A stretch of 63,928 nt of DNA, the filler included, from Octopus bimaculoides (taxonomy: Eukaryota), in NCBI RefSeq assembly GCF_001194135.2. It is 8 parts of 6 records of this genome, joined end to end, with 100 filler letters (N's around TTAATTAATTAA, not from the genome) between each part and the next. Parts side by side here need not be neighbours in the genome. Positions count along the whole stretch, not along the records: positions 50,868 to 56,874 come from NC_068984.1; 7 more parts are not named here. One strand, given 5' to 3'. Under the pieces are notes generated by a model. It made no database searches. It saw nothing but the letters and a program-made list of their open reading frames with translations, and was not told where the DNA came from. A program made the position numbers and the translations under genes. Shown here in pieces: positions 3,790 through 56,974 of this stretch; position 1 is the first letter of the stretch, and every line of letters begins with the position of its first letter.

Positions 3790-6000
3790 ATCGTAACTTT
3801 CCGTGAGAAGTCGGAAGTGAAAGAAGTGCGCTCAGTATAGTCTTTAGAGGTAAATGTTATTATTAATACACTCTACTGCCGTATGGGTATCGTGGGTTTC
3901 AAAATTCATATTTGTAGATAATTTTTTAATGTCTACATTTTATATGGATTTCTCATCAGTCTCACATAAGATGCTGATATTAATTTGAGATCACGTGATT
4001 CAAAGGAATGGTATTGTTCAGGGTATATAAGTCCTCTTATATTTTGGTGAAAATTACTTGTTCACATACTTGTCGTTTGTAGATGTGTGATTGCTAGATT
4101 GGATAGTTACTTTATGTCTGTTTATGCTGTGTTTGTTCATGCTTAGTATCTGTGTCAGCCTATTAAAATTGTTACACATTACTTGCAGATTGTTATGAGT
4201 TTAGTCTCATGTGTGTTAATCCCTGACTTGTAACCCGAAAATCTCAGGCAAAGTACATATGCCTTTGTTACCCTAATATACAGCCTGGACCCATCAAGGA
4301 TTTTCCCTTTGATGTTATAGGATATTCCTTTATTAGTTTGCGGACTCGCTTTGCAATGCCGTTGTCGTTCTATTTTATTTTATTTTTAGATGTTTAAAGG
4401 GTGCGATATATAAGTAGTAGTTAAAACGATTTTAAACCATACCCTCGTATTTTTCCCCCCTTTTCTGCTTTGTTGGTTTCAGTAGTTTTAACGTTCACTA
4501 CGCTATACACTATATGCTTCACTTGACATTCTTGTCATATCGAGTTTTATACATTATTTTGAGCAACACCTCGGATTTTTTCGGATTTGACTTTCTGGGT
4601 GATTTTCGACTTCATGAAAGATCCGAAGGTATAGCTGATTTTCATTGAAGTCCTATTGAGTATCTACCTAGAATTACGTTGGGGGGTTGGGTGTCTAATA
4701 AATTCATATCGAAATTAGTTTTCTAACTTAGGGAGAAAGGAGGTGGGGACCAAATAATTTTCATACATCTGTTTTTGCATTTCTGTCCTGGTTTAGGGCT
4801 ATACATGTATTTAATGTTATCTTAAATCTGCTATCTATTTCAGCTGCTTTAATCAAACATTTGTTTAAAGGAAAATAAGCTGCAGATTTTGTGGCTCATA
4901 TTGGGGCTTGGATATTAAATACTACCTGCGAGTGGAATGACCCTCTTTTATATAACTTAGCTCTTTATTCGGTTTACGGTACGGTTTATAAACACCTGTG
5001 ACTAAGTGTGGGTTATCAACTAAGAAATTAGCATTTGTTAGGTTAATGTATTTTCTTATATTCCAACCTAAATTGCTATGGGTCTCAGGTCATTACCGAA
5101 TACATCCATGGAATATGTGTAGCAATTATGTGAAATAACTAAAATATAATCGGTAAAGATCAATGGTTTGTTTGCAGAATTTTTCTTAAAGTTTATCTAG
5201 GATAAATATTCCGATCACGTCGCATGCATCATCACTCTCGTACGATCCCATTGCGATATCAAAGGCATCTTCTGAATTTATTTTTCAAACCAGGTAGATT
5301 CGTTATTAAATAGGAGGGTCTTTCGGGCGTGCATAATTAAATTGAATACTTGGTCACTGATAGGACCAAGTCTACGGGATAAACCTAAAGCGTTATCTAG
5401 TTTAAGGTCTAGTGAATAACGGTTAAAAATCAGTAATATCAAAGTGTGTAATCCAGTTTTTATTTTTCTACGAGAATAGCATCAAGCCAAGTTATCACAG
5501 CAGATGTATTATTCCACAGAACTACGTACATTTCTGTCTCTTAAAATCTTCTTACTAGCTAATTAATTTAGATATGAACCTGTTGTTGAAATCTTGTTTA
5601 TGATCGGTTGGCAACGTATAAACATTACGTTTAGTTAGACATTTAATTCTCTTAATTATATTTAAGGTTCTGACATCTTTGCATTTACCATTACTATGCG
5701 TTATTTTTTAGCTGGAATATTATGTAAGAGCTTGTTATATTTATCGTTAGCAACTACAAATAAGATTTTAGTTTTATCTGTAAAGGCGGATATGTTTCTA
5801 GACGATTTTGGTTTGTGTAATTCGTTTGAGAGATTAGTTTGGCATTTAGTGTTCTTGGTCATAACTTGTTGGTCTGCTTCGAATGAGAAGAGGTAAGTAT
5901 CTGCACGATTTTATATTATAATATTCAGAAGCAGCTGTGATTATCTCTTTTACATGGAATGATTGATGGGAAGAATAGCAATTACTTGGTAAGAATGGCA
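3790..6000 (-). mobile_element. Decayed Penelope-like retroelement (RT + GIY-YIG remnant, Neptune-like)
   Basis: Minus-strand motifs with stops and frameshifts: DHKQDFNN, FDITDF, LIMHARKTLLFNNESTWFEK, FDIAMGSY..DACDVIGIFILDKL, TGVYKPYRKPNKELSYI. Confidence 0.85.
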
Positions 6001-6554
6001 CTTTCCAGCCAGACAAGGAAAGCACCCCAAAGAGATGAAAGTTTGTACCACCAAAATATAGACTTATAGGAGATTGAATACTATACGAAAAATATACCAA
6101 GACCAAGTAATATGATTTACACCAAAACACAGACTGATAAGGTGGAAGATGTGTGCAGAATGAGATTGGAGGTACTTCTTATTAACTGGATATAAGTATA
6201 TATGCTTCTCTCAATCTATCTATCTAGGTGTGTGTGAATACATGTGTGCTTATGCATACACATTCACACACACACACACACACACACNNNNNNNNNNNNN
6301 NNNNNNNNNNNNNNNNNNNNNNNNNNNNNNNNNNNNNNNNNNNNNNNNNNNNNATACACACACACACAGGGGCAAGCACAGATATGTTTAGCAAACAGCG
6401 TATTTTGACGGTTGTCAAAATTGTTGATGATCAGTTAATGAAGGTGCGTAGATAAGTTTTAAGTAATCAGTTCTCTAAACTTTTCATATTAATGGGTCTA
6501 AATGCAGTGTAGTCATGCCCAGTTAGGGACAAAGCTGTTGCTCACTCTCCTTAC

Positions 6555-6593
6555 CTTCCATGAATAAACACTGTTGCGACTTCATGTAGAAAT
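6555..6593 (-). CDS. Internal 39-nt exon (E|FLHEVATVFIHG|R)
   Basis: gcatag acceptor and gtaagg donor; phase 2-2 keeps the frame open with both neighbours. Confidence 0.6.
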
Positions 6594-7655
6594 CTATGCA
6601 GGCGGGGTCACAATCACCACTGTCACAATAAAGATGGGCAATGGTTTAAAATTTGGAGCCATTTATTTTCTGCTCATGTGTCACAATGTGCACGTGTGAT
6701 ACGTGTACAAATGAGTATTTTATTTTTAATACAGAAATGAGATAAACTTACATAGAAAATTACTTGAACAGGGATTTCGGTTATTTGCTTTCTGACATTA
6801 TATTCTGATAATAATAAAATATTCTGACAGGTCTAAACACGCGCCCCTCCTTTAACATTCATATACTACGAAACGTAATGTAAACTGATACATTTCATGA
6901 ATAAATTAGCCATCATTTCTCTGGTGCATTCTGGCACATTTTACTGACACAGTCATTTTATGGGGCATTCTGATACATTTTACTGATATTTGGCTTCCTG
7001 ATATAGAACTTTCTTGTAATAAAAGTTTTACTACAAAAAAAAACGTAAAACATTTAAGAAGATTATCATGGCTGATATACACGGACAAGTGTACTAAATG
7101 GGGGAAAAAAATTGAATATACTGAAATTTAATGCTTCAACATTATAAAATGCACACAGTCAATTAACAATAAAATATTATATTTCAATCATTGATATACA
7201 ATTATCCACAAATTACTATAAGTGTATATCTCAGGTTAACATAAGAAAGCCACTAAATATACTTAAATTAACTTAGAAAAAATCTGTCGGCTCACCACCA
7301 CAATAGCAGCAAAATATTGGCCATATCGATACAAACCCACGCTCACAACAACAGGAGACAACCCCAAAACATTTAGGGATGACAGCAGTCCTCCCACACA
7401 CGGACAGACATAAAAAGACACGAGCGGCAAGTCACAAGACAAAGCAACATCCGTCCCAGTTGCAAACCGGAAATGACCCAAACCCGACAAGCCGCAAAAC
7501 CAAAGCCAAACAAAAACATAGTAACAAGCGTATAAGTGGAGATAACGAGCACAACAGACGCTTGTTTTGAATTCTCGTAGTTCACACAATGGCATCTCAG
7601 TCTACAAACACGCTATATAGTACATGGCATCGGGTAATTGTTATATATATATATA

Positions 7656-7686
<31 letters not shown>

Positions 7687-7879
7687 ACATAAGACATTAA
7701 AATAAAACGTAGAAGTATATCTACATAGTTTTTTTTTTCATTACCAGTCTTTTAAACAGTATATTTTCTATAAACCACATTCCTACATATTTTGTGCTGC
7801 ATGAATATCTTGTTCTGTAGTGTCCATTTTCATACTGTTGTTCCGCTGCCTTAAGATTTATGTTGGTTGAATGTATTCA

Positions 7880-8280
7880 TGCAGTTTACTCAAGACGTTG
7901 AAACTAGTAGAGTTTGCAGGGCACTAAAGTATAATGGTTTTGGCAATCATATATCTTAGGCAGGGGACATTTGTATAGAGTGCAAATGACAGCAGAGGTG
8001 GTAGAGAGAAATACTTGATGTAGCTATGAAATCCATAATCAAATTAATCCTACAGTGAACCTAATGCTTGAAAATATTGTCCAGACACGATAAGAACTAA
8101 ACTACGTTAGAGTATTTTTCGTCCACAAGCCTTAAGCGAAATGGACAAAGTAAATTTTTGCATGAAGTAGGTACATTAAGGGTAGCTAGATCACTTCTTA
8201 GCAAAGCACTAACATTTGCGATGAGCATCAATACTATATCTAAAGAAGAAGTAAACGTTATATTAACTATTGAATTCGAG
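7880..8280 (+). mobile_element. Possible highly decayed Penelope-like RT fragment
   Basis: SLLSKALTFAMSINTISKEEVNVI resembles the LL.KAL.FA segment preceding HARKSLLF. Confidence 0.35.
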
Positions 8281-8685
8281 TGAAATTACTGGGAAAGACA
8301 AAGTAGGCCTGTTTTGTTCGGCATACCATGGGATCTAGAGATTCAGCTCAGGTAATGGCTTTAGTAGTTACCTACAACGTAAAATATATAAATAATGAAA
8401 TTTCACTAATAGCTGAAGATATTGATATTACCTATTGTAAATAAATCATAACTACTTAGTAACAATTGAAATGACGGAAAAAAATTGTAGTAATACATTC
8501 ACACGCACACACATATACACCCACACACAACATATAGAAAGAGAGAATATGAGGGATTTAATTCACTGGTGATCTAAACGAATAGGTACGCTGTGTAGGT
8601 GCTATAATCCATCATTCGTTAGAGTCCAATTTCACAGCTGAGGTTGGAATTAGAGATCAGTAGTAGGTTTCCGATTTAGCATGTA

Positions 8686-9294
8686 TATATTAGGGGGAAA
8701 AGGACAACAAAAACCAGGGCAGTTATAATATTTAATTAGAGTAAGGTGAATTTGAGATAATTAATTATTAATTAGTTAATTAATTAACTAATTACCCATG
8801 TGGACCATTTTCATACTTGCTAATCACTTTATTTTTTCAACATGAAGGCAACATACAAAATACTGCCAGGATTTACTTGGGATTATACTTGAGGACCTAT
8901 ACTTTCACGGAAGTACGGGTGAACTCCATGTCTCCGGAAGAAAATGAGCTGTGAACTTTATTCTCCTGTCAGTATTCTTCTATCTATTGTTTTACTCTTC
9001 ATTCTTCTATCTAATACCTGATCCCCTTATAATCTGTGAATTACCTGTCTAGAACTTTCATAAATGCTACTTTGACAGTGTGGAAATAATACCCAGATAA
9101 TGGAGATGCTGACTTATCACTATCACTCGGGATTTGACAGGAACATCAGTAATATATCCAATAATTAGTTAACTAATTAATGAATTTATTAATTAATTAA
9201 TTACCTCAAATTCACGTTGCTCTAATTAAATATTCTAGATGACTCGAGATACTCATCTTGCTTTGGTTTTTGTTGTCCTTTCCCACTAATATAT
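8686..9294. mobile_element. MITE-like element with about 110-bp imperfect terminal inverted repeats, TA-flanked
   Basis: ttagggggaaaaggacaacaaaaacc...aattagagtaaggtgaatttgagataatt mirrors aattacctcaaattcacgttgctctaatt...ggtttttgttgtcctttcccactaa. Confidence 0.75.
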
Positions 9295-9717: not shown

Positions 9718-10400
9718 ATGCTGGTGATCTTCACGTATGTGTGTGTATGAAGGTGTGAAAAAATGGGGAGGGGAGAAAGGAGTTGGTCAGTTGTGGTGTG
9801 TGCGTGGTGTGTTGTGAAGTGATGTGTGGTGTGATGTGAGGGTGTTGGGATGTGGGGAAGGCGAAGTCGGGGGAGGAGAGAGTGGGGAAAGCATGGGTGG
9901 AGTTTGGGTTATATATATATATATATATATACATATGTATGTATACATATATGTATATAAAGAAACATATATATATATACATATGTATATATACATACAT
10001 ACATATATATGCATACATACATTCATACATACATACATATGTATATATATATACAAAATTAAGTGGAATGGCCACTAAAAGTGGACTCCTATATGTTAGA
10101 AATAGATGCCGAATCACCTAACCACGAAAAGTATGTTCTCCCCAAAAAATTGGAGATCTTGGTGCGGACCAAATTGTTGTGTGGTCAATATTTTAGAATT
10201 ATATTGTTTTTTTTTTTCTGCACATGTTGTTCTTATACGTGTGTGCTGAGGAAGTTCCTCATTGGGGCACATTTCTTCTCTGTGTGAAGTTTGCGTACTA
10301 TGTGTGTTCATGTTTCACGTTTAGGAAAGGAGCTATCCTGGTAGGATTACTGACGGAGATAGTGCTTCTCGGCCTAATTAGCTAAATATTTTGCTTAATT
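9300..10400 (-). mobile_element. Decayed Penelope-like 3' region (pLTR with hammerhead-like motif, CA-rich spacer, linker remnant)
   Basis: Same layout as 23690-25939; remnant IILKY*PHNNLVRTKISNF. Confidence 0.5.
9403..9440 (-). ncRNA. Minimal hammerhead-ribozyme-like motif (variant core)
   Basis: tcttt-CTGTTGA-A-GAGC-gta-GCTC-GAAA-CGTT-gaaga. Confidence 0.5.
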
Positions 10401-10410
10401 GTTTCCTTAC

Positions 10411-10496
10411 TCTACCATATCATGTCCGTTTTTGTTGTATACTACTCTCAGTCCACCGCCCCCATAAAACCGATATTGGTTTCTGTTATTTATTTT
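10411..10496 (-). CDS. Internal 86-nt exon (KINNRNQYRFYGGGGLRVVYNKNGHDMV|E)
   Basis: ctctttatatcttag acceptor, gtaagg donor, phase 0-2, open frame. Confidence 0.7.
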
Positions 10497-10803
10497 CTAA
10501 GATATAAAGAGCTAGAAGGTCAGCTCTCTCTCTTTGCTATGTTCCTACTATCTCAGTTTCATAATGTTCCTAACATGAAACCAATGGTAACCATAATTCA
10601 CAAACTGATACATTATAAGCACCGATATGACATGATGGATAGTATAGGGAAACCTTATGTAAAATGTTTAACCAATTAGGCCTAAGAACGACAATTAATA
10701 CATGCCTTAATACACTTAACTTCCTAGGCATTAACATGAATCTTAACACAAGAAAATTTAAGCCCTACTAGAAAACAAATAGGGTAGCCTCTGTAAAACT
10801 TAC

Positions 10804-10836
10804 CTGAAGTTTATCATTTAGTATATTTGAGCATTT
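10804..10836 (-). CDS. Internal 33-nt exon (KCSNILNDKLQ)
   Basis: tgtctag acceptor, gtaagt donor, phase 0-0; 98-nt intron separates it from the preceding exon. Confidence 0.65.
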
Positions 10837-10934
10837 CTAGACATGCAACTATATGCATTGGAATACATACATAAAACAAAACATGCACATCTGCACATAT
10901 AAATTCATAGATACGTAAATACATACACACATAC

Positions 10935-11022
10935 CCTGTAGTTGATGTTGAAATTCCAATGAAGGAGCCTTGGATCCAGGTTAGAAACTGGCTCTTTATT
11001 AGCAAGAAAATTTGCAATAAAA
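10935..11022 (-). CDS. Internal 88-nt exon (FIANFLANKEPVSNLDPRLLHWNFNINYR)
   Basis: attattcag acceptor, gtatgt donor, phase 2-0; the frame continues through four downstream exons. The exact acceptor is uncertain. Confidence 0.6.
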
Positions 11023-11202
11023 CTGAATAATGACATACATACATACATACATACATACAAACATGCACATATACACATCTTTGTTGGTGTTTGTATTTGT
11101 GTTCGTGTACTTCAGCGGACATGACGGGTGTGCATGCATAGTACAGCCACGTGGAAGTGAATAATTGGGATTTTTAAATAGATTATCGACATAACACTTT
11201 AC

Positions 11203-11225
11203 CTTTCGGTCTGGCGTATTTGAAA
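11203..11225 (-). CDS. Tentative 23-nt exon (FQIRQTE|S)
   Basis: cgttag acceptor, gtaaag donor; ends in phase 2 as the next exon requires, but upstream phase continuity is unresolved. Confidence 0.35.
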
Positions 11226-11460
11226 CTAACGTTAGAGTGAATAATTATAGAATTTATAAGCAAACAAGTGATAAAATCAAAATGAAACCAGAATAGTTTC
11301 TTAAATCATGTATTATATTCGGGTGACTTGTGAACGTATCCAATAGGTTGGTAACTAGAAATCAACGCGTTATTGATCATGGAGCGAATTTCATGAGAAT
11401 ACGCGAAACAACGTATCAAATGTATATATTCAGTTGTGAATTTATTACTTTAGCACGTAC

Positions 11461-11571
11461 TTGTAATTGGTTTCAAGAATGTAGCAATATAGCAGTACGG
11501 ATTGTGAATGTGAAGGTATACAATAATGAGGTATTTGAGCAAAATGTGATTATGAAATGTCCATGAGATTT
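11461..11571 (-). CDS. Tentative exon (E|ISWTFHNHILLKYLIIVYLHIHNPYCYIATFLKPIT)
   Basis: ttaataacttag acceptor, gtacgt donor, single open frame; phase 1-1 fits the 18601 exon but not directly the 23-nt exon. Confidence 0.3.
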
Positions 11572-11885
11572 CTAAGTTATTAAAAATATAAATGAAGTGA
11601 GCTGACGTCAAAAGAAGAAACTAAAGCGGAATTGAAAAACAGTGCGTCGACTCGCTCCAACGCACTCTCAACTGAGTTATTATACAAATGTCAATGATCA
11701 GATCAAGTTTATAAATATATCTATAAATCATTTTACAGAGACACCTTCTATAAAAAATATCGAATGTGAATATCATCTACACAAAATTGCTTGTTGAACA
11801 TCAACGATGTTAACATCACCGAACAATATCCTTTAGAAATATACCTAAACGATATAAGTTCAAAACACTTCTAGTGATGCGTGTA

Positions 11886-11928
<43 letters not shown>

Positions 11929-12399
11929 GTGTGTGACATATTTAAGCTTTGTAGGAATGCATTTCTACACCTATGGATATGGTGCAATCGACTTCATAAT
12001 TGTCGATGCTTATCAAATTGTTTGAGTGTGATCGGTGCTGGTATGCAATATTTACAAACGTTGACATTCTTCAAATGTGTGAGATGGTATATTGGAAAAC
12101 TTTTTAAAGGAATGCTTTAAGAGCCCTTGTCAGTAATTTCTGCTTTAAGGAACATAGTTTCTCATTATGCACTGTTCTTTAAACTAATGTTTCTCTTTAT
12201 TCTAGTACCTGGTTTCCTTGCTTTTTCTACACTAATGATTAATGTTTGTGTGTGCCTGTGTGTGTATGTTGTGTGCGTGAGTATGTGTGTGTGAGTGTGC
12301 GCGTGTGTGCACCATAGCACATTCGATTAAAGATTTACTATTTGCAGAGTCATATCTGGGTGTGTGTAATATATCTGGACTTCGAAAGGAATCTTTCGA

Positions 12400-14400
12400 A
12401 TGTTATTAACCATGTTTCTTCTCATATGTGTCTTCATATGATCCTAAAGAGAGCAGCGCCATTTGAGGTGAAATGCTGCTGTCTTAGAGTTGTTATGTGA
12501 GGCGACCATGATTTCTGTAGATCAATTACACAGGTCAGGTACCAAGACTTGTGTCTATTTTAAAGTTGATGCCAAAATAATTTGGGCAGTGCTGTTGGAA
12601 TAGTTTCCACATCATACAAATCATATAGCGCACACAATGTTGTTGGAGGGAAGAAAGTCATATTATCTATTTATTTTCTGAAGAATCTCTGGGATGCTTC
12701 AGTTTTTGTATTTCGTTTCGTGTAGGGATACCACATCTCACAACAGTATTCAAGGTGAGGACGGGTGAAAGTGGAGAAGAGAATGATAATAACAGGAGCG
12801 TCTTTAGAACGAAAAGCTCTAAAGTATACAGAAGCACGCCCTGCTTGCCATGTCGACTTTATTTGTGTGATCACTCTTGCTTAATTTATTGTCGACAGTT
12901 ACTCCGAGGTCCCTAGCGGTGTGTGACGTCACGAGTTTTTCGTCTAATGGAAGAGTCTAAGGCAGCTGTAGTGCATACTCTTAACTGAAGTGGATTAATT
13001 CATATTTGTTCTTGTGTACTTGCATATTGTTTTTCTGCCCATTAGATAACAGCGACCAGACCCTATTGGAGATTAGCCCGGTTTTTCCCCCACGTCACTG
13101 TCCTTCACAAGCTTTGAATCAACCACGAAAATTATAATGCTGCTGTGCATGATTGCGTCAATAATGTAATTGATGTACATATTGAAATATGGTGACTTGT
13201 GGGACTCCACTGATAACTCTTTCCAAGCTATATCGAACACCATATGTTACCACATGCTGTATTCTGTTCACCACAAAACATTCAATACATTATAATAGTT
13301 TCCATTGTACACTAGCGTTGGATAGATTCTTTCGTTGTATACCGTTGTCAACATTGTCGAAGGCCTTGCTGAATACAAGGCAGATTATATCTGCACTTGA
13401 GCTTTCTAACAGGGCCATCAGGATGTCATCAAAACTAATACAGGAGGTATGTTAGGCAGTCCTTGCTATTGGGAAAATGTTACTATTTGGGAATAAGTAG
13501 GTTGTTCCTTTCCAACAAGTGAGATACCCGTGATCTTACAACTTTCTTAAATCATTTAAGGACATGCGGAGTAAGTGTGATCAGTTGGTAATTCACTGCC
13601 AGGAATTTGTTGCCCTCTTTGGAATCGGTGCAATCGGCTGAGATAGGAAATTATCGGCATTATAGCCAGCGTCCAGTGATTTCCTCCAGTAAATAGATAC
13701 AGGAAATATGATTTGATATCGTCACTCCGTCAGGAGTCTAGCGGGAACATGTCAGGCACCGAAGCTTATTTGTTTCTAAATGTGTTAATCGGTGCTATGG
13801 CATACTGAATATAGTGCAGTTTTTCTCCGACTAGCCATGTTGGGGTTGCTCCAAGTAGACCAGTAACCATTCTGCAGAATCTCAACTGTCTTCTGCACCA
13901 CTGATGTCTTCGTCAAAGAGTGGTCTAACACATGTGACAGAGGCCATATGCTTCTTAGCAATTGACTTTTATTTTCGCAATAACCCACTTTTCTTCCGCT
14001 ATTTATTAACTATGGGTGAGAGTCTTCATGAATGTTTGAAGATGATGCTTCTTTAATTTCAGTATAGTTATATATGTCAACTGCGACTGTTGTTGCTGGC
14101 AATATTTTCATCTGTGATTTTTCGATTCAACCTTTTTCTCATGAGAGTTCTTCGGTTGCGTGGGAGCCTGCGTTTAGTTTTGATCAAGCCTTCGTTTGAA
14201 ACACAACGGTTTGGTAGAGACCTAACGACTTTTGAGTGGAAGGATAAGTGGATTACAGAGACCGCAGTACTTGACTTATACTTATTTTGTGAAGAACGGA
14301 ATCGGGAAAGCAATACTCTGTGGAATTTGAACTTAGAACGTGAAGAGAGGCAAATTGCTAAGCATTTCATCCGAGATGCTAACGATTCTTCCAACTCACA
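12400..14400 (-). mobile_element. Decayed CR1/L2-clade LINE (spacer + RT to 3' end)
   Basis: Motifs LPRNRRTLMRKR, ADIICLVFSKAFDNVDNG, ISGVPQ, RDLGVTVDNKL, FRSKDAPVIIILFSTFTRPHLEYC. Confidence 0.85.
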
Positions 14401-15929
14401 GCATTTTTCCTCTTAAATATAATGAAACATGCGTGACTAAGTAAATCTTAAAATTATATCTATATTAATCCTCGGTATATTCATTTTCAGTATAATTTGT
14501 TTCTGTTGAAGAATTATATTAAAATTCCAATAGAAATAGCCTCACAGCTAGCTCAGCAGCTACCAGATATATGCTGGTTGTAAATTACAGGAATTAGTTA
14601 TAGTATGGAAAAATACCAGTTCGTATTTTATTGCGTTACTTGGGATTCCAATTTCAATATACGTTCGGGAGCGAGAGTGTCTTTCATCAAACTGGACTCG
14701 TTATTCGTTTTTATTCCTTTCGCAAAATATGTATATTTGTGTCAATGAAAGAAATTGTTTTATTAGTATTGTGTAAATAATATATTAACTTACAATGTTC
14801 TATGTAATAATTGAAGTTATTGATTATAAATAGTGTTGCTGCGTTTGTGTTCTTTTAAATATAAAGTGTGTGTGGTTCCTTTGTGTTGAAAATGATTCAT
14901 AATTACTGTCTGCTTCATGACTTACACTTCATCGTGTCTTTTAACGTAGGAAACAGAAATCGCTGGATGTAGTCATTTGGCTGTAATCTCAAGTGTTGTT
15001 GGAAGGAAAAGTAAGCCAAGCGTTGTTTTTTGTAGCTGTGCATAATTATAAATTGTGCACGCCTCAGTTAACATAGTACCGTATGCTCTCTGAAAATAAT
15101 GTCTGATATTTCACACACCATCTAGTGCAAAACTTATCTCTTATTCACACATTGTGCTTGTGTTAAACACCTATACGATTTCAATATATTTCTGTATTTA
15201 TATCCAAACGTCAACAAAATTATCGGTACTACTAACGCCTATTATAGAGTTGATATTTAACTCTTTATCGCAGAATACATATAATTGCAGTGGCTATATT
15301 ACTGCAAAACATGTAACTGTACCTACGTAATTAAAAGAGTTCTATAAGAAAAAAATATGACGTCGTCATTCCGAATAAGTGAAGATCTATATCCACTTCA
15401 TTCAATAAGTAGCAGAAAGTAAAACTGAGGAAAATACTTATAAAAAAAAGTGGAAACTGACTAATACCCTGCAAGTCCTGATCAAATAATATATGTGCGT
15501 GTGTGTAAGGTATGTTAGTGAGCGAATGCGTCTGTGTGTGTATGTATGTGTATGTGTGTGTGCGTGTGTGTGCACTTACACAACGAGAGAGAGTAGAGGG
15601 AAAGATACATAGACAGTCGGGAAGTTGCATACAAATACATATGAATAAATAAACATATAGGTGTACATACACACGCACGTACACGCACACACACACACAC
15701 ACATACGCACATATGTATGTTGTGTGATTTATATATGCATATACGTTGTGTCTTGGGAAAGCCATTACGCCAATTATAAAAAGACGAAATTTATATAAGC
15801 CTGTGTATATACGTGGGTATTCATCTACACTTGAAACGATTTCGATATGATTCATTTTATCTAATACAATGAGTTTATAAGTATAGACGTAGCAACATAG
15901 ACATTCATACAAACACACATATGCATACG

Positions 15930-50867: not shown

Positions 50868-51255
50868 TGTAAGACTACCCTTTTTGATATACTTACATTG
50901 TGATTTCTGCAATGTGGTGCATAAATTGTCAAGTAAATGAGACGCATCTTTGCCTCCACTGATTCACTTGCAAAGTGTTGAGTAAAATTATTTCGTTGCA
51001 GACCTCCTTTGGGTCTTTTTTATTATCACTGCGACACACATAGTCCCCAGTTGGTAACATTGATTTCAAGGCTCTCCTAGATGAGAGACTGGCTTTCCAC
51101 TTAATGTCTATGTTCCATGCTGGCATGGATTGGAGAGTTATTAATGTAGAAATATGGTATCGTAGCTACTAACAGTTGAGGGTTGCGTAGTCTAGACGGC
51201 GTTTTTAGATTTCATTATTCTCTTTAACCCGGGAAAAGCCGGGTATTTCTGCTTG
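50868..51255 (+). mobile_element. Helitron 3' terminal fragment
   Basis: GC hairpin cccgg-gaaaag-ccggg then CTTG|T; about 97% identical to the inverted copy at 63616-63928. Confidence 0.75.
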
Positions 51256-51875
51256 TATATATATAAACGCCTTTAATATATTCTTATGTATATATATTTA
51301 CGCATGTATATGTACACATCACATACATAAGGAAAGTGCCTGCGTGCGTGTATGCATGTGTGAGTCTGTGTGTTTCGTTGAACATTTATGAGACAATAAG
51401 ACACACCGTGTAAATATTTAATCATTTAGTAAATTGCAATATTCATTCATCGTAAAATTCGTCGTTTCAATGAAATGGTAAATTTTGATTTTCTTCCCAT
51501 TCGATTTCTTTCATTTTCGCTACTCGAGGCATAAACGGCGAAATGAATATTAGCAGACGATCGAGCAATAACATTGTATTCATATGCCATTTTTTATTTT
51601 GTTTTTTAATTTCAGATATCAATACGCTCAGACAAACACTTGTACACATCCACCAGCATACGCATTTTGGGAGTGAGACAACTATATAGATCTGCACAGG
51701 GCTAAACGCTTGTATTCAAAGGTAGTACAGAAACAAATAGTTGGCTATATAGATTGATTCATAGATAGACCGGAAGATAAGATAAATAAATCGATGAAGA
51801 TTGCTCGAGTAATACATATTTGATTCATTACAGAATCACATTCAAGCAATATTATGTATATATATATATACATAC

Positions 51876-51936
<61 letters not shown>

Positions 51937-52089
51937 NNNNNNNNNNNNNNNNNNNNNNNNNNNNNNNNNNNNNNNNNNNNNNNNNNNNNNNNNNNNNNNN
52001 NNNNNNNNNNNNNNNNNNNNNNNNNNNNNNNATTTGATTCATTACAGAATCACATTCAAGCAATATTATGTATATATATATATACATAC

Positions 52090-52146
<57 letters not shown>

Positions 52147-52210
52147 TGCATATACATATGTATAGACATGGATGTGCATATATACATGCATTTACATATA
52201 TATATATGTG

Positions 52211-52610
52211 TTAGGGTTAGGGTTAGGGTTAGCGTTAGGGCTGAAGTTAGGGTTAGGGTTAGGGTTAGGGTTAGGGTTAGGGTTAGGGTTAGGGTTAGGG
52301 TTAGAGTTAGGGTGAGGGTTAGGGTTAGGGTTATGGTTAGTGTTAGAGTTAAGGTTAGAGTTAGGGTTAGTGTTAGAGTTAGGATTAGGGTTAGGGTTAG
52401 GGTTACGGTTAGCGTTAGCGTTAGGGTTAAGGTTAGGGTTAGCGTTAGCGTTAGGTTTAGGGTTAGGGTTAGGGTAGGTGTTAGGGTTAGCGTTAGGATT
52501 AGGGTTAGGGTTAGGGTTAGCGTTAGCGTTAGATTTAGGGTTAGGGTTAGGGTAAGGTTAGGGTTAGGGTTCGGGTAAACGTTAGGGTTAGGGTTAGGGT
52601 TAGGGTTAGG
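52211..52610 (+). repeat. Interstitial telomeric array (TTAGGG)n with variants
   Basis: About 66 hexamers; variants TTAGCG, TTAGAG, TTAGTG, TTAGGA, TTACGG. Confidence 0.97.
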
Positions 52611-52948
52611 CAAATCCCATTCCTATCGTTACGTTTGATTGTTTCAAATTTCTTCATAGCTCCTTTGCATACTCTGATCCTTTCTTTATGTCTGTTACCC
52701 GAGAACTGCATGCGGTGAACGAAATGTTGTATATGTCTCTTTAATTCTGTAGGTTTGCACATGCAGGACACATTTCGCATTACTCTGGCGAGGTCTGCCA
52801 TCAATATATTGAATTTGGCATTGTCCGCAATAGCCGAATTCTGGTGGATCAGGTATTTGGAGGCCATAGGTTTTGTATAGTGTGAATGAAGGATTCGGAT
52901 TTTATTATTCTCAGTTTCTAACCAGAGTTCAGTATCTAATACAGGGAT
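52611..52948 (-). mobile_element. Inverted 5' segment of a Penelope-like element (RT thumb / linker)
   Basis: IPVLDTELWLE..KIRILHSHYTKPMASKYLIHQNSA..KFNILMADLARVMRNVS...RMQFSG...KRNDRNGIC. Confidence 0.85.
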
Positions 52949-53578
52949 TTGTCCACTCTATAGGAGCAAATCATGGAACACCATTGAAAGGATTAAGGAG
53001 AAAATAGGGAGGCCAACTCATGGTATGATAGCCACAAATACCAAAGCGTCATGTTCGTCGGCATCACCCCTAGAAGTGAACTGGCGTACCCCTTTAGAAG
53101 GGTCCTAGACAAACTTAAGCTAAGAATTAAAGTTGTTGAAAGGCCAGGCAACCCTATCAAATCCCTTATCGGTAGAACATACCCTTTTAGTAGAAGCCCC
53201 TGCACTGATAGGAACTGTACCGTATGTAGATTTAGCCCACAAACGAACTGTAAAACCAGAAATGTGGTCTATAATATAAGATGTAAAGAGGAACGATGCA
53301 GTAACAAAACAACGACATATGTAGGCGAAACAGCAAGGAGCATAGGGGAGCGGGCAAATGAACATTGCAGGGAACTTAAGGAAGGGAAGAGCTCATCAGT
53401 TCTGTACCAGCACGCTGAGCAAGAACATGGAGGCTCACTCAACAACATAGAAATTAAAATCTTATCCACACATAGCAGAGACGCAGCACTTAGACAAATT
53501 ACAGAAGCTACACACATAATAGAAGATAAACCTAGCCTGAATAGGAAACTAGAATGGAACACTAACACACACCCCTAA
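52942..53578 (+). mobile_element. Penelope-like element linker + GIY-YIG endonuclease (Naiad-like by motif recall)
   Basis: GICPLYRSKSW..(frameshift)..VMFVGITPRSELA..IKVVERPG..CTDRNCTVC..CKTRNVVYNIRC..C..YVGETARSIGERANEH..RQITEA..I..LN. Confidence 0.9.
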
Positions 53579-54020
53579 CNNNNNNNNNNNNNNNNNNNNN
53601 NNNNNNNNNNNNNNNNNNNNNNNNNNNNNNNNNNNNNNNNNNNNNNNNNNNNNNNNNNNNNNNNNNNNNNNNNNNNNNNNNNNNNNNNNNNNNNNNNNNN
53701 NNNNNNNNNNNNNNNNNNNNNNNNNNNNNNNNNNNNNNNNNNNNNNNNNNNNNNNNNNNNNNNNNNNNNNNNNNNNNNNNNNNNNNNNNNNNNNNNNNNN
53801 NNNNNNNNNNNNNNNNNTAAACCTAACCCTAACCTAACCCTAACCTTAACCCTAAACGTAACCCTAACCCTAACCCTAACCTAACCCTAAACCTAACCCT
53901 AACCTAACCCTAACCTTAACCCTAAACGTAACCCTAACCCTAACCCTAACCTAACCCTAACCCTAACCCTAACCCTAACCTAACCCTAACCCTAACCCTA
54001 ACCCTAACCCTAACCCTAAC
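53573..54020 (-). repeat. Interstitial telomeric array (CCCTAA)n on +, spanning an N gap
   Basis: ccctaac at 53573-53579, gap, then 53818-54020 including an exact 70-bp tandem duplication. Confidence 0.92.
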
Positions 54021-54219
54021 TTAATCCGCTGCCACCCAACCCGGTTTCGAGCCCCATACAGTTTAGGGGTAACTTTAGTAATATTCATTAAGATGTAATC
54101 ATTTGGATGCTACCATGACATCTCCCCTACCTCACACCAATTCAGGGACATTGAGATAAGTCGGGATGCTTGCCTTTCTTTCTCTGATTTAATACTAAAA
54201 AATATAAAATCTATTCACG

Positions 54220-54850
54220 TATTCTCTCTGTCTTTTGGGAGTTTCATGAGAATAGGGTCCTCAGGTATTCCCTTCTTCAGGGTCCTGTCTTTACACTTTT
54301 TGGCTATATCCCCAAGTGTGTCTAACTGATATATAGACCTCCAGCAATCTCGTACTTAGGTCTCTTAACGATTGCACGGACAGAGTTCTCAGGCAACTCT
54401 TCCATAGGGTCTTATCAAAAGAAACTGGCATGAACACTTACTGACTGGATATTACCCAGCCATCTTGTTTTTGATCTACTTTAGGTCTCATAATGGTTGA
54501 ATAGACTTAAAGAATCGAATTTGTGAGTCATTCTTGTGTCATTTTAATCACATGTCCGTCGTACTGGAGTTGTGACTTCTCAATGTGGAGAAGTTGCGAC
54601 TCGACCAAGAGAGACTCTCTGATCTCCGAGTTATGCACCCTGTCGAGTCACGTTGCTCCAGAGATCCTTTCGGATATCTCCATATCGGCCGCTTGAATTT
54701 GCGATCGTACTGTCCCGATCATTAGACAACATTGAAAATCATAGGCGAGAATGGGTATGAAAACTAAATTGAACGTAGCGAGTTGGGTTTTTTTACCAAT
54801 CCCTCCTCTTTCCAGGATCGAATGCTGACGCTCCTTCATTACAGTGTCAG
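54220..54850 (-). mobile_element. Decayed RTE LINE 3' fragment
   Basis: FIPILAYDFQC..RSQIQAADM..RISGAT*LDRVHNSEIRESL..QLQYDGHV. Confidence 0.75.
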
Positions 54851-55311
54851 CACCTGTAAATCTTGCATCAAATTGAAGCTCCTGCTGAATAAAATATAGA
54901 ACAAAAATCAGGGCTGACTTGAGGCTACGGATAAAACTTATGACTACATGAGCGATACTTTTGTAAGAGAAGCGAAGCTAGTATTTAGATACAGATTAGA
55001 TATGAATCGTTCTGATGGAGCTATTATCTAGGTATGAACTAATGCATATCATTTTGACTTTTATATTGAGATACAGAGAATATGATGTTTAGCCAAGACA
55101 CCTGCCGAGAGATATTTACTGTGCTATATCACTGTGAACTGGCTTTCAATATTTTTTGTAATATCAGCTTTATAAACGTGACATAATTATCAATCTTGAA
55201 GCTTTGTTTAAACACGACCGACATTTCTTCTTCGTCTTATTCCATCAGACACTGTCTCTACATCTCTTCGCTCTTATTATTTCTCTCTTTCTCCTTTCAC
55301 TTCCTCCCTCT

Positions 55312-55376
<65 letters not shown>

Positions 55377-56038
55377 NNNNNNNNNNNNNNNNNNNNNNNN
55401 NNNNNNNNNNNNNNNNNNNNNNNNNNNNNNNNNNNNNNNNNNNNNNNNNNNNNNNNNNNNNNNNNNNNNNNNNNNNNNNNNNNNNNNNNNNNNNNNNNNN
55501 NNNNNNNNNNNNNNNNNNNNNNNNNNNNNNNNNNNNNNNNNNNNNNNNNNNNNNNNNNNNNNNNNNNNNNNNNNNNNNNNNNNNNNNNNNNNNNNNNNNN
55601 NNNNNNNNNNNNNNNNNNNNNNNNNNNNNNNNNNNNNNNNNNNNNNNNNNNNNNNNNNNNNNNNNNNNNNNNNNNNNNNNNNNNNNNNNNNNNNNNNNNN
55701 NNNNNNNNNNNNNNNNNNNNNNNNNNNNNNNNNNNNNNNNNNNNNNNNNNNNNNNNNNNNNNNNNNNNNNNNNNNNNNNNNNNNNNNNNNNNNNNNNNNN
55801 NNNNNNNNNNNNNNNNNNNNNNNNNNNNNNNNNNNNNNNNNNNNNNNNNNNNNNNNNNNNNNNNNNNNNNNNNNNNNNNNNNNNNNNNNNNNNNNNNNTG
55901 TGTGTATATATATTTATACGTATATATGTATTTATATATATTTATATATTGACATGTATATGTATGTATGTATTTATAAATATATACATTTAAATATATC
56001 TATACGTATGTATATACATATATATATGTGTGTGTATG

Positions 56039-56129
<91 letters not shown>

Positions 56130-56169
56130 ATATATGTATTTATGTGTGTAAGCATGTACGTACACACGC

Positions 56170-56450
56170 ATATATTTATGCCAGTTGTCCTCTACAAAAC
56201 AGAAATTTGGACAACGTACAGAGCAATGGAGACGATATATGCCATTGAGATGTGGAGCTATTAATCAGAATAAGCTGGAAAGAAAAGGTCACAAATGTTG
56301 CATCACTAGAGTAGCTGAAAGTTCTAAGACATCTATTTTATGCTTCAAGTCATTGTCTAAGACCATACTGACAGGGTGTGTGGACGGGAAGTGAGGCATA
56401 GGTCACCAAAGACGGACTGGAGTGCATTAGGTTGGCGCTCAGGATGTGGG
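56170..56450 (+). mobile_element. Decayed RTE LINE fragment
   Basis: FMPVVLYKTEIWT..IYAIEMW. Confidence 0.6.
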
Positions 56451-56974
56451 GGAAAAAACAAAAGTAGGACTATTCGTTCTTCTGGAAAATAAGATAGACA
56501 ATTCTTCAAGAGGTGTCCCCCACCCCCACCCCATCATGGTCGCCGTCTAATGACGGAAACAAGTATAAACAACGGAGAAAACAAAATGAAGAAACAGAAA
56601 CGCATTTGTATCCAAATATTACAGCATGCTCAAAAAATAATACATATATAATGTGTGTGTGTGTGCGTTTAAGTAGAAAATTTTGTATACTAATTTCTAT
56701 GATATTAAAACCTTCCCATTTCTTAATGGAACAAAAACAAAGCAAATTACATAGATTCCGATAAGGATTATCAAGAATCCAAGTTGACCTGAAGAAACCA
56801 AAATCGACAGCATAGTATGGCCGTAAAATATCAAAAAAGATATAACAAATACCTAATATATATATATATATATANNNNNNNNNNNNNNNNNNNNNNNNNN
56901 NNNNNNNNNNNNNNNNNNTTAATTAATTAANNNNNNNNNNNNNNNNNNNNNNNNNNNNNNNNNNNNNNNNNNNN

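Follow-up and report, generated by a model that had tools for sequence, protein, structure and literature searches.

We analysed a window of 63,928 nucleotides (nt) from Octopus bimaculoides (GCF_001194135.2), by which we mean the whole stretch of DNA as presented; positions are counted along it. The piece under study (positions 50868-56874, from NC_068984.1) is a short-read scaffold in which three N gaps were counted. It contains a fragment of a Penelope-like element (PLE) with a GIY-YIG nuclease domain, which adjoins an array of telomeric repeats on its left and probably a second, oppositely oriented array on its right: the left side of this geometry is real and the right side probable. The features are collected in Table 1.

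Table 1. Features at the PLE locus, in positions of the window (RT, reverse transcriptase; EN, endonuclease; ORF, open reading frame; LINE, long interspersed nuclear element; TRF, Tandem Repeats Finder; L002, native copies in Octopus vulgaris, see text).
Feature	Position	Strand	Evidence or context
(TA)n/(TATG)n-type microsatellite, ordinary flank	52063..52209	.	TRF; directly left of the left array
Degenerate (TTAGGG)~67 array, G-strand 3' end toward the element	52210..52610	+	TRF
PLE piece A: RT thumb and RT-EN linker (PVLDTELW...KRNDRNGIC)	52609..52945	-	nucleotide alignment to L002
5'-to-5' junction of inverted A and direct B (TACAGG|GATTTG)	52944..52945	.	blastn end points and alignment to L002
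PLE piece B: linker (GICPLYRSKSW), CX4CXXC, complete GIY-YIG nuclease domain	52944..53573	+	alignment to L002
CCTAAC, start of C-strand repeats at contig end	53574..53579	+	L002 alignment breaks right after CACACC
Assembly gap (N, 238)	53580..53817	.	between contig ending CCTAAC and contig opening in C-strand array
Degenerate (CCCTAA)~34 array with 70-nt higher-order repeat x3	53818..54020	+	TRF, autocorrelation
Old 5'-truncated LINE ORF2 C-terminus (...ISGAT*LDRVHNSEIRES..LQYDGHVIKM...)	54020..54899	-	six-frame translation

The left array (period 6, 67 copies, 84% matches, TRF score 548) contains 38 perfect TTAGGG units and no CCCTAA. Its G-strand variants are chiefly substitutions, such as TTAGCG (eight times) and TTAGAG (four times), and are spread over the whole length; no clear higher-order repeat was found in it by autocorrelation, and that idea was dropped. 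For the right array 87% matches were obtained over about 34 copies (TRF scores 315 and 363), with 23 perfect CCCTAA units and no TTAGGG, and its variants, read on the G strand, are chiefly 5-nt TTAGG units. Taken as a 70-nt unit present three times, this array reaches 94% matches, and the autocorrelation at lag 70 is 0.947. Both arrays differ from the canonical unit by 13-16%, the best 60-mer cross-match between them (54/60) is no better than a match to the perfect repeat, and outside them no telomeric run of at least two units occurs anywhere in the piece. The arrays are real and far above chance, opposite in orientation, degenerate, and not copies of each other. A fold-back or palindromic assembly artefact was considered and ruled out, because the variant spectra are unlike and the arrays do not mirror each other. 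At the outer boundaries the flank ends in G on both sides (..ATGTG|TTAGGG on the left and, on the minus strand, ..GGATTAAG|TTAGGG on the right); outside the arrays the sequence is ..ATATGTG on the left and CTTAATCC.. on the right, and the unique right flank past the CCCTAA repeats is CTTAATCCGCTGCC. The LINE fragment to the right has five stop codons in 205 codons and, running from 54899 to 54020, reaches the right array with its 3' side; it is context and not part of the PLE. The right array could be the tail or the target of this minus-strand LINE.

A single contig runs from the (TTAGGG)~67 array through 965 bp of PLE sequence, which starts directly at 52611, to CCTAAC. As reference we used native copies of the element at three loci: L002, 24 kb of Octopus vulgaris with three copies (OX597831.1, 50359320-50383602 reversed), L003 with tandem copies and L004 with a single partial copy, the latter two from other species. 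The three L002 copies are 85-87% identical to the window PLE at the nucleotide level. Piece A, with 111 codons, no stop and a dN/dS of 0.27, aligns to L002 13543-13879 at 87.5% identity (blastn). Piece B (dN/dS 0.15) aligns at about 85% to L002 13870-14499, 9290-9920 and 5451-4822; its sole alignment gap, at column 62, is a 1-nt deletion near 53005 that shifts the frame, after which the translation reads ...NSWYDSHKYQSVMFVG...CTDRNCTVC...VVYNIRCKEERC...YVGETARSIGERANEH...LNRKLEWNTNTHP*. In L002 coordinates the pieces are adjacent, with A inverted and an overlap of 10 nt: the first 10 nt of B (the GGGATTTGTCC region) repeat the last 10 nt of element sequence in A (GGGATTTGCC). A followed by B is collinear and contiguous in every homologue (the proteins P0001 and P0020, many others, and the Octopus vulgaris copies); in an element of about 3.9 kb, the 3' end of A thus falls within 10 nt of the 5' start of B. 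According to the alignment with the Octopus vulgaris copies, the 'SGQI' seen on the minus strand is the start of B read in reverse.

All three junctions share very few nucleotides. At the border of the left array with A, whose 3' end (...GGGATTTGCC) lies there, the sequence is TTAGG|CAAATCCC, with GG (52609-52610) in common; the 5' ends of A and B also share GG, a 2-nt microhomology; and where the 3' end of B meets the C-strand repeats (CACACC|CCTAAC) one or two C are common. The string across the inverted A and direct B is TACAGGGATTTG, and further junction strings of the locus are TTAGGCAAATCCC, TACAGGGATTTGTCC and CACACCCCTAACCC. An inverted microhomology of 11 nt at the A/B junction (GGACAAATCCC / GGGATTTGTCC) was dropped, since the alignment to Octopus vulgaris reduces it to 2 nt. 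After CACACC (ending at 53573) Octopus vulgaris has ACAACATATGA, the native 3' sequence there beginning CAATAGTGGATCC, whereas the window has CCTAAC: two of these six bases match the native ACAACA, and all six match the telomeric unit. CCTAAC gives piece B an in-frame TAA stop 11 nt ahead of the native stop position. Neither piece reaches the native 3' end, as B stops 11 nt before the stop codon and A about 630 nt further upstream. Comparison of the flanks revealed no direct repeat of at least 6 nt and hence no target-site duplication.

The contig with the left array and all PLE sequence terminates at 53579 with ...AACACACACCCCTAAC, and the contig beyond the 238 N opens with TAAACCTAACCCTAACC, inside the C-strand array. 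It is nonetheless quite probable that piece B runs on into C-strand repeats. On the two sides of the gap at 51937-52031 stand 116-nt stretches that are 98% identical (51818-51933 and 52032-52147), as if two contigs overlapping across an (AT)n tract had been left unmerged. Gap sizes in the assembly can therefore not be trusted, and the true length of the gap at 53580-53817 may be about zero. Public assemblies were queried for the exact 175-aa window ORF in order to find an independent assembly of the locus; no record came back. It might be argued that the right half is artefactual or unrelated, either because a C-strand contig was mis-scaffolded or because the array is a separate interstitial one (for instance a tail or target of the LINE). 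This would fit with the 238-N gap, given that the other gap in the piece is demonstrably an unmerged overlap, and with the tendency of PLE inverted structures to break short-read assemblies (PMC8557442). Furthermore, a 5'-truncated LINE must retain its 3' end, which here appears to adjoin the array, and the decay of the LINE matches the degeneracy of the array. We consider this account unlikely though not far-fetched, as the homology of B to the native copies ends exactly where CCTAAC starts, a contig end at CCTAAC is what one expects where an assembler meets purer repeat, and assigning the distal array to the LINE would still leave B attached to C-strand repeats.

An earlier note on this DNA had described the locus as (TTAGGG)n-PLE-(CCCTAA)n. 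The left part of that description is found in uninterrupted sequence, and the right part is only partially so (CCTAAC, then 238 N, then the array). The opposed orientation of the arrays, with the G-strand 3' ends inward, agrees with the counts of perfect units on the two sides (38 against 0 on the left, 23 against 0 on the right). The statement that both PLE pieces run 3'-outward into C-strand repeats likewise holds, for A on the minus strand and for B on the plus strand, where the junction consists of 6-7 nt.

The native copies show what the element looks like elsewhere. Every L002 copy ends in a stop codon and a 3' untranslated region (UTR) of about 95 nt, followed by a (TA/TG)n microsatellite; the microsatellite at 52063-52209 of the window is 78% similar to these tracts, although it is low-complexity sequence. 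L002 4131-15103 is a nest of PLEs, annotated merely as 'hypothetical predicted protein', with full copies of about 3.9 kb arranged as an inverted pair at 99.9% identity (4521-8992 and 10329-14800). The stretch between them holds a partial tandem copy together with an internal fragment in inverted orientation, and (TA/TG)n separates the copies. The inverted fragment at 8967-9140 (element 13588-13761) meets a direct partial copy from 9136 (element 13716 onward), so that this inverted/direct pair has a 45-nt overlap and a 5-nt junction; L003 also holds a partial tandem copy. Judged from these sequences, convergent head-to-head double-primed insertion is the normal mode of this PLE family, and in the L002 flanks double priming is hidden because (TA)n is its own reverse complement. 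Two pieces that read outward are thus not special in themselves, since inverted copies are the family norm.

Telomeric repeats were found neither in the 24 kb of L002 nor at L003 and L004. The CCCTAA arms, which the native copies lack, are therefore foreign to the element, and telomeres are not the target of the family. One could still propose that the arms are the intrinsic 3' tail of a telomere-targeting PLE subfamily, that is, an endonuclease-bearing analogue of Athena and Coprina: the first repeat supplies the TAA that ends the reading frame of piece B, and endonuclease-lacking PLEs do bear reverse-complement telomeric repeats at their 3' ends (PMC8557442). An in-frame TAA is, however, expected in one of three cases by chance, the pieces meet the repeats at two different internal positions (both without the native 3' UTR), and the three Octopus vulgaris copies and those at L003 and L004 are free of such repeats. 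This explanation therefore seems hardly credible to us.

The element is confirmed as a GIY-YIG PLE, as the earlier note had proposed from the sequence. The Pfam GIY-YIG model matches the window ORF (53051-53578) with E=5.6e-4, just under the curated cut-off, and 12 of 25 family members with a best E of 8.5e-7; some relatives carry a precomputed PF28514 match. An AlphaFold model of the ORF (pLDDT 85) has as its best fold match the I-TevI catalytic domain 1ln0 (probability 1.00, TM 0.69-0.72 on target), followed by R.Eco29kI. In the alignment of relatives the catalytic residues (Y, Y, R, E and N) are conserved, and the invariants of the nuclease region are C-X4-C-X2-C, VVY, two Cys, YxGE, R, EH, H, E and N. 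Within the domain, the CCHH signature consists of two Cys between VVY and YxGE (one invariant, the other at least 90% conserved) and the conserved His that follow (C80, C85, H107 and H128 of alignment A2). The window copy has CTDRNCTVC, which reads as C-X4-C-X2-C, and the three Cys of this motif are invariant in 25 relatives. The RT core is absent from the window fragment, which has only the thumb and linker that come after YVDD in P0001 and P0220. P0001 (440 aa) aligns to A and then B collinearly, with RYVDD upstream; P0220 from Octopus vulgaris, a 78% identical protein, was found by a profile search after a word-indexed protein search had missed it.

An all-against-library HMMER search yielded 4490 related cluster representatives (50% identity), some with ORFs of about 1050 aa; the members are mostly ENA contigs of 3-4 kb with a single ORF of that size, and largely unannotated. 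Invariant in 21 full-length relatives (about 1050 aa) are TDKSG, RKDHK..PxRPV, GSxDVxALYPS, GGxIG and RYVDD. The family profile matches a DRT1 reverse transcriptase (E=5e-6), and Pfam RVT_1 gives a weak match in 4 of the 21. Neptune elements are recognized by a C-terminal endonuclease with CCHH and CX2-5CxxC (Craig et al. 2021, PMC8557442), and on the endonuclease and linker motifs alone we would call the present element Neptune-like. The Hydra clade has DKT for DKG, no CCHH, a CxCX5C linker and elements below 3 kb (PMC8557442); with DKSG, CCHH, CX4CXXC and ORFs of about 3.1 kb, the family does not belong there. Membership of Athena or Coprina was also rejected, given the complete GIY-YIG domain and native 3' ends free of telomeric repeats. 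A hammerhead ribozyme, a trait of the canonical clades that is absent in Naiads, was not found by Rfam in the studied piece of the window (E<=1) or in L002 3500-15500 (E<=0.01), where all matches were low-complexity noise of miRNA models. Two protein records deserve mention. P0342 of Octopus vulgaris is a gene model that bears the name 'dynein regulatory complex subunit 6-like isoform X6'; part of it matches 19% of P0220 at 98% identity, either because a PLE fragment was exonised or because the annotation is faulty. The PLE relative P0193 of Stylophora pistillata is named 'Transposon Ty3-G Gag-Pol polyprotein' in its source record, and is probably a chimeric or misnamed gene model.

The relative ages of PLE and arrays can be estimated from their decay. 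The PLE has 330 codons without a stop and one 1-nt deletion. In simulations the probability of finding no stop falls below 0.05 above about 7% neutral substitution, and is 0.001 at 16%. Compared with an Octopus vulgaris copy, dN/dS is 0.18 and dN is 0.09, from which it follows that most of the PLE divergence arose under selection in active lineages; the neutral decay since insertion is estimated at less than about 9%. Set against arrays that are 13-16% off the canonical unit, one of them with a higher-order repeat and beside a LINE with five stops in 205 codons, the stop-free PLE appears to be the younger component, and the arrays were presumably already degenerate when it arrived. Freshly telomerase-healed ends are unlikely, since the arrays would have been old by then.

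The same estimate bears on the idea that the arrays were made during the event itself. The endonuclease would then have cut its usual (TA)n target, telomerase (or else the PLE RT, a relative of TERT, with a C-rich RNA as template) would have added TTAGGG-like repeats to both 3' ends, and the PLE RNA would have been copied from the two ends so lengthened. In favor of this, the left array begins at (TA/TG)n, the type of target used by the family in Octopus vulgaris, and the flank ends in G at either outer boundary, which is also seen where telomerase has healed a break. Yet TA microsatellites are very common in this sequence, which makes their adjacency weak evidence, and the degeneracy of the arrays, their unlike variant spectra and the higher-order repeat on the right contrast with the little neutral decay of the PLE. 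We regard it as highly unlikely.

Our preferred reading, which we put forward tentatively, is that the 965-bp two-piece Neptune-like fragment is a reverse-transcribed patch, produced by one endonuclease-independent double-primed event across a break that was likely located in a pre-existing head-to-head array. Two G-rich 3' ends at the break would anneal by 1-2 nt to internal C-rich sites on a single PLE RNA, one (...CACACC) 11 nt before the stop codon and the other (...TTTGCC) about 630 nt upstream. The downstream cDNA (B) would extend to the site held by the second primer, while the upstream cDNA (A) would extend 335 nt more, and joining of the cDNA 3' ends at the 2-nt GG microhomology would seal the break. 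The anatomy is that of twin priming: adjacent segments of one element, an inverted A, a small duplication and the GG junction. The 10-nt coincidence of the A and B ends is expected here, because the downstream cDNA stops at the upstream primer; from independent events it is very unlikely (about 21/3900). With their internal 3' truncations, 1-2 nt of microhomology and no target-site duplication, the array junctions bear the endonuclease-independent signature, though the nuclease domain looks intact. A head-to-head interstitial telomeric array forms a quasi-palindrome and is fragile; most probably such an array was already present and broke at its apex, leaving the two ends. Freshly healed or intact chromosome ends are less likely, as the arrays are older than the insertion. 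This reading supposes that the inverted arrays existed before the PLE, that the sequence is continuous across the gap at 53580-53817, and that priming from the arrays was RNA-templated and not a matter of ligation.

Two further models were rejected. Under self-priming by a hairpin, piece B would be missing or would form an rcB...B inverted repeat, and neither fits; telomerase healing of a break inside the PLE predicts A followed by TTAGGG instead of CCCTAA.

Ligation would come into play if a pre-made double-stranded inverted fragment (the reverse complement of A followed by B) had been end-joined into a break between facing arrays, without any priming. Microhomology of 1-2 nt is typical of non-homologous or microhomology-mediated end joining, an inverted dimer reads outward whichever way it is inserted, and the family makes inverted junctions natively. 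On the other hand, such passive capture requires a free fragment with both ends inside the element, leaves unexplained why the truncation sites are C-rich and complementary to the G-strand end, and still needs the facing arrays. We think it improbable, if well worth bearing in mind.

Alternatively, the locus might record a true chromosome-end fusion, in which eroded telomeres (stubs of variant repeats) both primed one PLE RNA and the joined cDNAs fused the ends, after which the product was fixed. The anatomy would be identical to that of the preferred reading, with two G-strand primers annealed by microhomology to internal sites of one RNA; telomere fusion yields arrays that stand head to head, and erosion down to proximal variant repeats would leave degenerate repeats. 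Human 2q13, a head-to-head interstitial telomeric fusion relic, resembles the window in that (TTAGGG)n meets (CCCTAA)n and the arrays are degenerate; it differs in that the window has a retroelement of about 1 kb at the apex, and that a fusion is only a candidate here. L1 is moreover able to join distal ends and even to make a ring chromosome (PMC11702581). Nevertheless, nothing shows a terminal position of the arrays. The flanks are an ordinary microsatellite and an old LINE. The left-array variants occur along its full length, with no proximal-to-distal gradient, and fixation of a dicentric or fused chromosome is a rare outcome. A chromosome-end origin is therefore decidedly unlikely in our view, and the findings suggest that an apex break in an existing inverted interstitial array fits equally well as, or better than, chromosome termini.

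Several observations weigh against the twin-priming reading. Only 6-7 nt of C-strand repeat are contiguous with B and the remainder lies past the gap, so that the right-side link consists of these nucleotides plus the scaffolder. A microhomology of 1-2 nt cannot separate priming from end-joining of a pre-made fragment, and everything rests on one locus in a gapped short-read assembly. A head-to-head interstitial array is itself rare, and insertion exactly at its apex needs a break hot spot. Finally, tandem arrays may outpace unique DNA in acquiring variants, which weakens the age argument.

Twin priming by L1 was reportedly described by Ostertag and Kazazian in 2001, and endonuclease-independent L1 insertion at dysfunctional telomeres is said to have been described by Morrish et al. 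in 2007. As in the preferred reading of the window, twin priming and end bridging by L1 involve two 3' ends that prime one RNA, with the 5' segment inverted beside the 3' segment, a small duplication at the inversion point and microhomology, and the RT can join unrelated ends. In contrast to L1, the window element is a PLE and not a LINE, both primings would be internal, poly(A), the 3' end and a target-site duplication are all lacking, and both primers would be telomeric G-strands. L1 ORF2p bridges distal DNA ends by reverse transcription and leaves twin-primed inverted pieces at two junctions (PMC11702581), and for PLEs template jumps and inverted structures are documented (PMC3846280; PMC8557442). 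Endonuclease-independent L1 insertions at breaks and dysfunctional telomeres, the subject of PMC1920257, share with the window 3'-truncated copies, microhomology and the lack of a target-site duplication, as well as, on the preferred reading, priming by a G-strand 3' end that yields the sense strand followed by CCCTAA; they cap or extend a single end, whereas the window has two opposed junctions of this kind connected to one another.

Athena and Coprina are endonuclease-lacking PLEs at telomeres (Gladyshev and Arkhipova 2007, as cited in PMC8557442). They resemble the window in having the PLE sense strand followed by reverse-complement telomeric repeats and, on the preferred reading, in priming by the G-overhang. 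They differ in that the window family encodes an apparently intact GIY-YIG nuclease, has native copies without telomeric repeats and showed no hammerhead, and in that the window junctions lie at truncation points and not at a dedicated 3' terminus. For endonuclease-bearing PLEs (Penelope/Poseidon, Neptune, Nematis, Naiad, Hydra) partial tandems, an inverted 5'-truncated copy and a (TA)n bias are reported (PMC8557442, PMC3846280). The present family agrees with the canonical ones in its order of RT and then GIY-YIG, its CCHH and CX2-5CxxC motifs and its head-to-head inverted pieces, and the Octopus vulgaris copies, flanked by (TA/TG)n, match the (TA)n bias. The window copy, unlike canonical PLEs, lies between telomeric arrays without a 3' end and without a pseudo-long terminal repeat, and the octopus copies gave no detectable hammerhead ribozyme.

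Some further features lie to the right in the same piece. A (CT)n microsatellite at 55304-55376 ends a contig and is followed by a 524-N gap (55377-55900). Next come a long (TA)n/(TG)n microsatellite block (55900-56150) and, on the plus strand at 56150-56560, a second decayed LINE C-terminal fragment of another family (..LYKTEIWTT..ISWKEKVTN..). Every contig break in the piece falls within a simple repeat.

These results also change part of what the earlier note had suggested. Its proposal that two ends acted as primers has gained support, as adjacent pieces with a 10-nt overlap fit one RNA and two primers. Its alternative of a new telomere-targeting PLE family cannot be maintained, and the refuting condition it named, CCCTAA arms as an intrinsic part of other copies, did not arise at L002, L003 and L004. 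A role for the endonuclease is not implicated, in view of the internal truncations and the minimal microhomology, and telomerase-healed ends have become unlikely, given degenerate arrays beside a stop-free PLE under a dN/dS of 0.18.

If the geometry holds, the locus would be a germline-fixed natural case in which a telomerase-related RT patched or joined two telomeric G-strand ends. It would then link three processes: the inverted insertions of PLEs, endonuclease-independent priming from telomeric ends (L1, Athena/Coprina), and the retrotransposition-mediated end joining seen in L1 experiments. It would also be a candidate head-to-head interstitial telomeric site and a possible fusion relic, in a group of animals whose chromosomes were reshaped by ancient fusions. 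Apart from the geometry, the PLE family to which the fragment belongs is large (about 4490 clusters at 50% identity), essentially unannotated, and barely seen by Pfam.

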